Source: Malacoraja senta
Lineage: Eukaryota
NCBI GenBank assembly: GCA_038087875.1
Contig: CM075978.1
Span: forward strand, 102,548,001-102,612,000
Direction of reading: 5' to 3'
DNA length: 64,000 nucleotides
A program made the position numbers and the translations under genes. Positions 29,652 through 54,465 of the stretch are shown piece by piece; the stretch's first letter is position 1; every line of letters begins with the position of its first letter. A model generated the notes under the pieces. That model was not told the DNA's origin. It searched no databases and saw only the letters and a list, made by a program, of their open reading frames with translations.

Positions 29652-29969
29652 TTATTCTGCATCTTTGGGCATCTCTGTTTCATTAATGCTATTTTTCAAT
29701 GTTTGAGTGTCAGGGCTAGAGGTTTCAGATTCTCTGTCCATTTTATTAATGGCTGATACTTCACTGACTTTTTCCTTTTTATCTTGGCCATGTTCAGCAG
29801 TATCTGCATCTACATTTTCCTCTCTTTCAACAGTTAGAGTTTCTGAAGGTGTGCCAAAGCCAGCATTTTCGGGTCTTGCACCATCACCATCGTAAATAAT
29901 ATCTTCAGGGTTTGGTGCAGCAGGACAGAACTCTTCCCCCGGGCAGAGTTGATGAAAGATAGCTTCTGC
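29652..29969 (-). CDS. CHM: CHM / Rab escort protein 1, last coding exon (equivalent to human exon 15)
   Basis: Acceptor ttttttttccag|GCA. Encodes [29 protein letters not shown]..., versus human [29 protein letters not shown], then an acidic tail and TAA. Confidence 0.93.
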
Positions 29970-31529: not shown

Positions 31530-31696
31530 CTTTTCAACAGACTGTTCAAATCCAAGTGCAGCACTAGGTCCAGAACAGATGTAAACATTACTGGGAAGGC
31601 CTTCATATGCATTTCTGTCAACTGCAGATGAATCTCTTACGTTGAAAAATAAAGCCCACAGCACTTTAGGTTTCTCTCCTTCACATTCGTGTGAAT
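31530..31696 (-). CDS. CHM: CHM exon (equivalent to human exon 14), 167 nt
   Basis: gtgtag|...AAG|gtacag. Encodes DSHECEGEKPKVLWALFFNVRDSSAVDRNAYEGLPSNVYICSGPSAALGFEQSVEK, versus human KPRILWALYFNMRDSS...LPSNVYVCSGP. Confidence 0.95.
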
Positions 31697-38212: not shown

Positions 38213-40740
38213 CAGTTTCCTCATCGGGAATTTAGCACATTAGAGAGGCATAACAAACGCCCCGAATTAATTAAGTCACTGCTCCACATTCTCCGAGATA
38301 CTCAACCTTCCGAAAAGTAATGTATCCTGTAATTTTCAGATCCTAACTTGTCAACCTGTAGCCATGTCTATCTAATAGCAGTCAGATCAAATTTCTACTT
38401 GCTTTTAATTTGTCAGTTTCACTTTGATTGTTACGTATACTCAGGTAAAGCTCTTTATGTTTCGTCCTTACTATTTCAGTAATCTTTAAGTTCATCCATC
38501 ATTTTACTCTTGGATTTGTATACTCTATCCCTTTAGGGAGTCTCAATAAATTCATGCCAAGTCCAGTGACAGAATACTGACCAATATACTGGTTCAATAC
38601 ATGTTAGCAAATGTGGCACTTCCACATTTGTGCACACAATTCCTGAAGATGATCCTTTGCCACAGAATCAGTCCATTGTCAAATTTCTGAAAGTTGCTAA
38701 TCCAAGCCCATTGAACACAGGGAAATGGATTAACATTTTTAGTTGGTAAATGCTCAGAATATCCCAGACATTGATGCAAGGTTTTTGCTCTCATTCTCCC
38801 AACATGCTGAATACCAAGCCTTGTAACTAACCAGCATAAGCTTATATTTAGAGAGATCTAATGTTTTGTGAAAATTGTGTTACATATGAATGAATTATAG
38901 CAATAATCACAATTGAGTCAATTACATTAGAATTGCATTTCTAACAGAATGGAAGTGAAGACTGGATGGGGGGGGGGAGGAGAAATGACTGAATACTGTT
39001 GCAATAGCACGTCATTTTTTGCAAATGTGTTCTCATTAAAATGTAACCAGAACAACAATTATGACCCCAGGTGTTGTACATAATGTCTAGCTTTGGAGTG
39101 TGAAGTGATTGCTTCATTATGTGCATGAGTTATTGATGTGTTCGCGTATGTGATTACAGTAATGTCACGTCAGAAGTTCATATTGAGGTACTCAGGTTCC
39201 AGAAAAGTATTATCTGGTTCACTCTTCATATCTATTTCAAGATCGTTAGTTATAAGCTTCTAAATTGTTTCCAGCCCCATGAGGTGTATCACATTAACTG
39301 GCAACTCCTTTTTGTAATCTTACTTCTTGTGCAATTATGTCCAATAATAATGAAATTTCACTCAATATTGGCCTCTGATTACAGGCCTCTGGAGACCAGC
39401 TCAGAATTACAGTAGACCAGTATTTTGTCATCATTTTATAAAGTGAGCACTGCAGCAATGGATTGACCAGAAGAGCCACAAAAACTTTAATAGAAGGTTC
39501 TCACTTTCAGCCATGCCTAGTTCAAAACCAAAGTAACAGTATGGATAAGGTCAAATTGTGGTATTGGGCATCATTTCAATGAAAACCCCACTTACATGAA
39601 CAGGATTGCTTCTTATGCCAAAGTAATTGTGGCAATCCGAGACGTGTTCCAGGGCAAAAATCACAAACCATGTGGGGGGGGGGGGGGGGGGGAGGGGGGA
39701 GGAGGACTCAATTTGTCCATTAATGACAAAGAACCAAAAAGAAAAGGGTCAAATTCCCAAAACTGGAACAGGGCAAATTCGGTACAAAGTGAACCCAAAT
39801 ACAAGTTATTCACACTTCAAGAAAATGATTGGAAGCAAATTTATGAAATGAGAAAATACCAATGGGATGGAAAGAGTGAAAATAAAAGATGGAGAGAAGG
39901 AGATATGGGTAAAAGAAGCTAAAACAGGAAACGAGGAGAAAACATTTCATATACCCAACTAATAAATTGAGGCTTTGTTTGCTTTCAAATCTATTTTGGT
40001 GTTCTTTAAAACAAATTTTGGGAGCACTTACTCCAATCTCGCTTCCTTCAAATTCAGCTCTTAAAAAACAAACTCACTCAGGACACCAAAGACATGGTTT
40101 CATTTAATCTTAGAAGTTTCACTGAAACTTAATGAATATGAAAGTTTGTACAAAGTCAGTGCTCAAGTGTTGCAAGATCTGGATAAAGTTCATGCTTGGC
40201 TGATTTATAGCAAAAAACTCTAATATCACACAAATGCTGGGTAATGACCATCTCCAACAACAGTCCAACCTAGTGTCCCTTATATCACTTTATGAAATCA
40301 CACAACTTCCAGGTGCCCTTCATCTTGTGGACAGTTACTAGACTAGTCATGTAAATACTTCAACTTCAGAAAGGCTAATTCTTCAATAATTTCCTGACAT
40401 CCCAAAGCTTTTAAATCAACTTTGTGCACAAATCAGTAACCATCTCATGTTCCTTCCCCCCCCCCCTCCCCCCTCAGGTCAAGACATGTTGAATTGGACA
40501 CACATTACTATGATTGGCAAGGCAAAATCCTGGAACGTTATCTCACAAGAACACTTTCCTGACATGGCCTATACAGTCTCATAAAGGTGACAAGCAGCAC
40601 CTTCCATGATTATCTAAGATATATAGTAAATGCTGGCCTTGCTATCAATCTCCACATCTTATATAAATAGAAAATAGAATACTGTAACATAATTGTCCAC
40701 TTTGTCGTGTCCTGCAGTGAATAATGTCTTGAGTTCATAC

Positions 40741-40842
40741 CATTTTCTTCGTTTTCACTGTATGCAGCAAAAAGTCTGTACATCACGGGGCTCCAAGTCT
40801 TCTTTGGCAGTTCCATTTGAGGACAAGTTAAGTGGACCAAAT
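40741..40842 (-). CDS. CHM: CHM exon (equivalent to human exon 13), 102 nt, containing two compensating 1-nt indels as given
   Basis: aaatag|AT TTG GTC CAC TTA ACT TGT ... AAT G|gtatg. As read: YLVHLTCPQMELPKKTWSPVMYRLFAAYSENEEN. The shifted frame in the middle reads SNGTAKEDLEP (human SSKTAREDLES). Confidence 0.9.
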
Positions 40843-42231
40843 CTATTTGCAAATAAAATCACAATTCAATCAAATTAGCAAAGAAACATTTCAAATGAAA
40901 ACATTTTTCAATGCTAACATATCCATGGAAACCTCCAGTGTTCTAGCACAATACTTTATGGTGCCATTTGATCATTTAACTTTTTCTGTTATGTTTATTT
41001 TGTTGTATTGCCAAAATGCACAGGTGTAATTATTTTGCACTTTTCCAATATTCATAGGTCTTGAACGTCCATAACACCAGAAGGTTCGATGTCTAATTTA
41101 TGGTGAAGATCCTGGTGTTGGCAACTTTATTAGTGACTCAGATTCATGTACATAGGATTCCTGGAGATGAAATATCAAATTATTATTTATTTGTTAAATT
41201 GAACACTAAGTTTAGAAACGTGCTTCTAAATACATTAGGAACATATGTACTGGGTCACTACTGTACTTTGTGAGTATCAACTACAATTGAATTTATAAAG
41301 CAAAACAGAGGGGACGATTTCAAATTCTTTGATATTGAAATGAATTGTGTGTGAACAGAAAATACACCCACAGTACATTAAAAAGTTCCAAACAAATAAT
41401 TTGGCTTCAGTAATCCAAAATATATACCTGAATATATACTTGAAAGTGCACGCCTAGCTATTAGAATTGTTTTAAATATAAACTTACAAGTATTTGAAGG
41501 AATCTCAAAACTGTGAGTTCCCATTATGCAAATACTGAGCTACATGGATTAAAGTTGTCCAAAACTGCATAGTTGGTGAACCATATAGACCTCATTTGAT
41601 TTCATGTCCTCTGGCAAATAGTACAGGCAGTTCGTAAAGAAAAAAGAGAGAACCAGTGACATGCAAATATATACACTTGCTTAATGTTTTTCTTAATATT
41701 GAAAATGGTAATGCTATAAATGTCCACACTGCCCATCAAGCAAAAGTATTGTATCACTGATCTTATCCACTGGCTGACTATCTGAACTGGACCTTGCGGG
41801 GAAAGCAAATCAAGAGGGAAGTTAATACTGATTTATTTTAAAAAGCTATACTTTTCATCTTATGACAAATCTTGCAAGAATGTTCAAATGGGACTGGATA
41901 ATGATGAAACCTGTTTGGACTATTATGGTGAGCTTATCAATGCTTGCAGCAATAGCGTAATGCACCAGGAGTTATTTTGGACACTGGGAAGTCCTACATT
42001 TACTATTTACTTCTAGGGACAGCAGTTGGTGGTTTTGACTGGTTGGCAAAGCACAATTGGCACACTGTTTATGCACTTCAAGGTACAAGAGTGTTATTTA
42101 ACTTAAACTATATCTTCTGCTAAAAGTTGAAGCAGCAAATTATTCTATTTATTAATTGCTCTCTTGCAAATTGTTCACCATTGTGCAAGCATATCCTTGA
42201 ATTCTTAGTTACTGAACATCCTGACTGTATC

Positions 42232-43298: not shown

Positions 43299-43395
43299 AG
43301 GTGCCCTGTGGACAGGTCATTGAAGATGGACAGAGTTCAATGATTCGTACCAATGGCTGGCAATCCTCCCTTGCAGGCACAGTTAAAATAGAAAT
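43299..43395 (-). CDS. CHM: CHM exon (equivalent to human exon 12), 97 nt
   Basis: tgacag|ATT...ACC T|gtaagt. Encodes [32 protein letters not shown], versus human [32 protein letters not shown]. Confidence 0.95.
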
Positions 43396-44524: not shown

Positions 44525-44585
44525 CTGTTCAGATTCAGACTTCAAGATGGAAGAATCTGTGATGAGAACAGCTCTTGAAATATAC
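44525..44585 (-). CDS. CHM: CHM exon (equivalent to human exon 11), 61 nt
   Basis: tcacag|G TAT...CAG|gtag. Encodes (R)[20 protein letters not shown], versus human [22 protein letters not shown]. Confidence 0.93.
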
Positions 44586-46084: not shown

Positions 46085-46189
46085 CTGTACTGGATATTTT
46101 GAGTACTTTTTTTAGGTAGATAGCTATCATTCACAATAAAATGTTCACAGGTTATGCGAAGGCCATTACTGTCAATTACAGCTTTACAT
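46085..46189 (-). CDS. CHM: CHM exon (equivalent to human exon 10), 105 nt
   Basis: ttgcag|A TGT...TAC AG|gtaa. Encodes CKAVIDSNGLRITCEHFIVNDSYLPKKSTQNIQYR, versus human [25 protein letters not shown]. Confidence 0.94.
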
Positions 46190-54387: not shown

Positions 54388-54465
54388 CTTGCTGTTTCTC
54401 TGTCGACCACCAGGCATTGCACAGAATGTCGCAGACAGTATGTTCCACCAAAGACTGCAGACATC
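54388..54465 (-). CDS. CHM: CHM exon (equivalent to human exon 9), 78 nt; the most 5' CHM exon found in the window
   Basis: ttgcag|G ATG...GCA AG|gtaagg. Encodes (R)[25 protein letters not shown](R), versus human [25 protein letters not shown]. Confidence 0.96.

Follow-up and report, generated by a model that had tools for sequence, protein, structure and literature searches.

Two cancelling single-base errors in a skate genome assembly almost certainly account for an apparent compensated frameshift pair in exon 13 of CHM

We analysed a stretch of 64,000 nucleotides from the Malacoraja senta assembly (the window), which carries exons 9–15 of a gene on its minus strand. Scanning of the 1.94 Gb assembly with the Pfam GDI family (PF00996) located exon 8, a REP-type exon (L001:9535-9759, minus strand) that lies a short way upstream of the window. 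When this exon was used as the query in a representative search, full-length Rab escort proteins were returned, the closest being REP1 of Salmo trutta. The window exons were mapped with tblastn, using REP1 of lungfish, caecilian, gar and trout as queries (Table 1); exons 8–15 are colinear with the lungfish, caecilian and gar proteins, at identities of 55–82%. All seven window exons have AG/GT borders and, when joined, form a single open frame whose sole stop is the terminal one. Human REP1 motif strings found no match to exons 14 and 15, the skate reading LWALFF and not LWALYF, and the skate protein diverges in its C-terminal tail, like the REP1 proteins of other vertebrates. By these sequence comparisons the gene is CHM, a single gene in this skate, encoding Rab escort protein 1 (REP1), which acts as a chaperone and brings unprenylated Rab GTPases to Rab geranylgeranyltransferase. 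An earlier note on this DNA had recognized exon 13 as belonging to CHM, an identification upheld by a match to rat REP1 (see below), PF00996 and the colinear tblastn exons.

Table 1. Coordinates of CHM exons and of assembly-only indels in the window (position 1 is the first base of the window)
Feature	Position	Strand	Basis or remark
CHM exon 9, 78 nt	54388..54465	minus	tblastn, joined frame
CHM exon 10, 105 nt	46085..46189	minus	tblastn, joined frame
CHM exon 11, 61 nt	44525..44585	minus	tblastn, joined frame
CHM exon 12, 97 nt	43299..43395	minus	tblastn; joined to exon 13 in X25 mRNA
Third assembly-only 1-nt indel, intron 12	40934..40936		CC in assembly, CCC in runs
CHM/REP1 exon 13, 102 nt	40842 -> 40741	minus	AG acceptor 40843-40844, GT donor 40739-40740
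Exon 13 counterpart of rat REP1 residues about 501-534	40741..40842	minus	PDB match spans 502-532
Base absent from assembly	40820..40821		GA-T-GG in the runs (plus strand), CC-A-TC on the coding strand
GGGG in assembly, GGG in 4/4 runs	40787..40790		Apparently spurious base, coding strand CCCC for CCC
CHM exon 14, 167 nt	31530..31696	minus	tblastn; joined to exon 13 in X25 mRNA
CHM exon 15 (terminal), coding part including TAA stop	29652..29969	minus	tblastn, joined frame

The remainder of the gene is divided in this assembly. CHM exons 1–6 lie on the plus strand of a second scaffold, C7, at 26.910-26.925 Mb (26910762-26924539), and this part of the gene terminates 2.5 kb before a 200-N gap. 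On the scaffold of the window, C2 (where the window spans 102548001-102612000), at least 40 kb without a gap precede exon 8, and none of these six exons was found there. Neither the whole REP1 protein nor a targeted 49-aa query located exon 7 in the assembly. The split between C7 (plus) and C2 (minus) is probably due to a contig break combined with a scaffolding misplacement.

In the frame set by its neighbouring exons, exon 13 as assembled reads LVHLTC-PQMELPKKTWSP-VMYRLFAAYSENEEN, while the same bases in the neighbouring frame read SSNGTAKEDLEP. Its 11 middle codons give PQMELPKKTWSP in frame and, one frame over, SNGTAKEDLEP, a conserved REP1 motif. The earlier note had taken this for a compensating -1/+1 frameshift pair that rewrites the motif and leaves the length (102 nt), phase and splice sites of the exon intact. 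As a description of the assembly text this is accurate, as the exon borders and the joined exons 9–15 confirm. The text also has the form that defines such a pair, with two indels (+1 at 40787-40790 and -1 at 40820/40821) in one coding exon, a net length change that is a multiple of 3, and an exon that still measures 102 nt. A whole-assembly search recovered one copy of exon 13, and no second copy or haplotig of it was found elsewhere in the assembly.

A PDB search with the exon 13 peptide in the assembly frame gave no hit at E≤10, while the hybrid, read-supported reading matched rat REP1 residues 502-532 (1VG0, 1LTX; E=3.4e-5). Over the 12 residues that follow HLTC, mean identity to 120 vertebrate REPs was 6.9/12 for the shifted frame and 1.2/12 for the assembly frame; judged on sequence, the out-of-frame match to the REP motif is far above chance. 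Several positions of the motif are near-invariant among the 120 proteins (A in 111/120, D in 111/120, L in 110/120 and E in 99/120). The rat match and the 120-protein comparison show that the shifted frame is the ancestral and selected one, which the DNA still encodes perfectly. They bear out both the polarity proposed in the earlier note and its reading of SNGTAKEDLEP as the conserved REP1 segment. The 120 proteins were collected as homologues of Salmo trutta REP1 and are all from bony vertebrates; a search among them for REP1 of cartilaginous fish (shark, ray) gave 0 among the 120 listed. A profile biased to skates was dropped after MAFFT scattered the short skate exon peptides when aligning them onto lungfish REP1, and the cross-species evidence within skates therefore comes from run contigs and not from proteins.

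We compared the assembly over positions 40300-41300 with contigs of four public runs. Two of these, X1 and X2, are different samples of the best-matching organism (organism A), with word shares of 0.85 and 0.80. X4 is DNA of organism C, a second skate species that is about 2-3% diverged in introns, and X25 comes from organism I, a third skate species, for which a spliced mRNA contig and one unspliced contig were available. Besides X1 and X2, the candidate runs were DNA of the related organisms B-E, with word shares of about 0.3, and RNA-like runs of C and I. All four runs were compared as Logan contigs; these follow the majority path, such that a rarer allele may be lost.

At 40787, the runs leave out one G of the assembly's four at their full depth (20.1 of 20.1 in X1, 2.2 of 2.2 in X2, 21.7 of 21.7 in X4 and 126.5 of 126.5 in X25). 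Behind 40820, X1, X4 and X25 insert a T, again at full depth, and with this base the codons are CCA TCA, for Pro and Ser. X2 shows the insertion too: its contig ends at 40820, but the 11-letter loose end, TGGACAAGTTA, consists of a T followed by 40821-40830. In X25, the unspliced contig (record 15) finishes in ...CATTTGA-T and has the loose end CATTTGAT. A further C is inserted behind 40934 at full depth in 4/4 runs; this site belongs to intron 12 and precedes exon 13 by 92 nt on the minus strand, which shows that the errors are not confined to the exon.

Beyond these three sites, the assembly and organism A are nearly identical. A single X1 contig (2019 nt, depth 20) covers the whole 1001-nt stretch and differs from the assembly by the three 1-nt indels (40787, 40820, 40934), one substitution (40503) and nothing else; X2, which covers roughly 820 nt, has the same three indels and 0 substitutions. 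Indels thus outnumber substitutions in about 1 kb by 3 to 1 in X1 and 3 to 0 in X2. The X1 word share of 0.85 is close to the value expected with four point differences in 801 nt, and X1 is therefore the same genome as the assembly apart from those sites. At all three indel sites X4 and X25 share the state of X1 and X2, so the assembly state is unique and derived at each of them.

With both corrections made, exon 13 measures 102 nt and encodes LVHLTCPSNGTAKEDLEPVMYRLF. Its codons TGT CCA TCA AAT GGA ACT GCC AAA GAA GAC TTG GAG CCC GTG ATG translate to C-P-S-N-G-T-A-K-E-D-L-E-P-V-M, and the corrected exon aligns to residues 502-532 of rat REP1 (1VG0, 1VG9, 1LTX; PF00996). Compared with that protein, the skate gene is ordinary after this correction. 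Among the three species, exon 13 has a sole substitution, at 40750: X4 (organism C) carries T for C (plus strand), which turns the codon GAA into AAA (Glu>Lys) in the ...SENEEN tail, where conservation is poor.

Evidence of splicing came from X25. Its record 14, a contig of 2406 nt at depth 126, aligns exactly to 40741-40842 with 0 substitutions and only the two exon indels, and its loose ends are 100% identical to 31667-31696, the start of exon 14, and to 43299-43328, the end of exon 12. Record 14 is spliced CHM mRNA of a related skate, joined in the order exon 12-13-14. The junctions fall exactly on the predicted borders and the mRNA keeps the conserved frame, an observation that applies to the related skate only.

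These findings indicate that the compensating -1/+1 frameshift pair is almost certainly not a real feature: exon 13 is an ordinary, conserved exon that is expressed, as seen in mRNA of a related skate. The genuine, motif-rewriting frameshift advanced in the earlier note is refuted by all four runs, since X1, X2, X4 and X25 read TGT CCA TCA ... GAG CCC GTG. The explanation that the note had named as a serious alternative, assembly error, is almost certainly the right one and is borne out by the contigs of the four runs. The read check of the two exon sites that the note had named as its refutation came out as expected for an artefact, with CCA in place of CCC at the first site. The frame analysis and the repair sites proposed in the note were right, except in one detail: the surplus G at 40787-40790 stands, but the base to be added is a T at 40820/40821 (an A on the coding strand) and not a third G/C at 40821-40822. 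Its description of both sites as G-run errors holds for the homopolymer at 40787-40790, the other being a dropped T in GA[T]GG.

We propose that two consensus errors entered the assembly inside exon 13, 33 nt apart, as an extra G at 40787-40790 and a dropped T at 40820/40821, and that a third such error is located in the intron at a distance of 113 nt, where CC would stand for CCC at 40935-36. The two exon errors have opposite signs, a gain and a loss of one base, and would therefore leave exon length, phase and splice sites unchanged. Mistranslation would be confined to the 11 codons between the two sites, mimicking a compensated frameshift pair. The cause may be that consensus building or polishing remained incomplete in a locally poor part of an assembly made from noisy reads. 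No further frame errors were seen in exons 8–12, 14 and 15, so errors of this kind are locally clustered and not frequent everywhere. CHM shows other trouble in this assembly, namely its division between scaffolds, the nearness of the C7 part to a 200-N gap and the missing exon 7.

Residual 1-nt indel errors, notably in homopolymer length, are documented in long-read assemblies and create false frameshifts (PMC8812927, PMC12007338). The differences at exon 13 resemble them in that they are assembly-only 1-nt indels, are contradicted by contigs of the same organism, cluster locally and outnumber substitutions; two of the three indels in the exon 13 region also sit in short G/C runs. They differ in that the two exon errors cancel, leaving no stop or broken ORF as a flag, and in that one of them, the T dropped from GATGG, is not of the homopolymer type. 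The position of the 40820 site outside any homopolymer is a point against assembly error. On the other side, 3/3 indels are contradicted at full depth in X1, X2 and the two outgroup species, and the differences from organism A are mostly 1-nt indels and not substitutions. With 0-1 substitutions per kb, the occurrence of three 1-nt indels in a span of 150 nt is the mark of consensus error and not of polymorphism.

In form, the exon 13 text is like a compensatory frameshift pair, with +1 and -1 indels 33 nt apart, an 11-codon segment between them and unchanged flanks. It is unlike one in that the indels are missing from both conspecific and related-species DNA and RNA: both are absent from the organism A samples X1 and X2, and the DNA of organism C and the spliced mRNA of organism I have the conserved frame at exon 13. 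In a systematic survey of compensated frameshift pairs, only 6 of 624 candidates passed filters that require a pair to be shared by at least two species with independent assemblies (PMC8935012). The exon 13 pair fails that filter.

A real pair could still be a private or heterozygous allele of the assembled individual, replacing SNGTAKEDLE with QMELPKKTWS in a conserved helix-capping motif. The assembly does read this way, with the frame exactly restored, and the perfect preservation of the ancestral frame in the DNA is what a very recent event would leave; contigs, moreover, demonstrate presence and not absence, and a minor allele could be hidden. We nevertheless regard such an allele as very unlikely, given that two samples of organism A and two related species are without the indels. 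The haplotype would also need a third 1-nt indel 113 nt away on a background of 0-1 substitutions per kb, a ratio of indels to substitutions opposite to that of real polymorphism, and would alter positions that are near-invariant in the 120 vertebrate REPs, in an essential single-copy gene. Such an allele, in which the pair and a linked intronic indel rewrite 10 residues, might have been produced by one error-prone repair event. If true, a compensated frameshift of very recent origin would be segregating in a prenylation gene that is essential. Scarcely credible is the notion that exons 8–15 are a decaying partial duplicate or broken half of CHM whose indels mark early pseudogene decay: although exons 1–6 lie on C7, exons 8–15 on C2 and exon 7 was not found, each exon has one copy only in the assembly, the seven window exons retain AG/GT sites and one open frame, conspecific runs are without the indels, abundant mRNA (depth 126) in a related skate is spliced across these exons, and the C7 part ends only 2.5 kb away from a 200-N gap, as a fault of scaffolding and not biology would have it.

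Under the assembly-error explanation, skate REP1 biology is ordinary and the S-x-G-T-A-K-E-D-L-E-P segment is kept. The case illustrates that uncorrected 1-nt indels can cancel within an exon and thereby be missed by ORF-based checks. The wrong peptide, PQMELPKKTWSP, could enter any annotation based on this assembly, and frameshift-type findings elsewhere on this genome need a read check before they are interpreted.

The run contigs also revealed variation in intron 12. Organisms C and I carry insertions of 24-30 nt at 41043-41044 and of 13 nt at 41080 that are in neither the assembly nor organism A; these look like real lineage-specific indels that group C and I against A. In X1 and X2, extra unrelated contigs with loose ends cover 40452-40494, 40627-40669, 40884-40901 and 41173-41199, which suggests small dispersed repeats on these short intron segments.

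Other GDI/REP-like loci are present in the genome. Intron-bearing GDI genes lie on C4 and C9. An isolated weak GDI/REP-like match (C3796:417034-417189, minus strand; PF00996 positions 200-254, E=1.6e-4) is located on a 1.2-Mb unplaced contig. At C757:177238-177912 (plus strand), an intronless open frame encodes about the first 142 residues of a vertebrate Rab GDP-dissociation inhibitor of GDI1 type and then diverges; it matches bovine GDI alpha at E=3e-74, is nearly identical to it over long stretches, and resembles a processed retrocopy of GDI1 that has been truncated.
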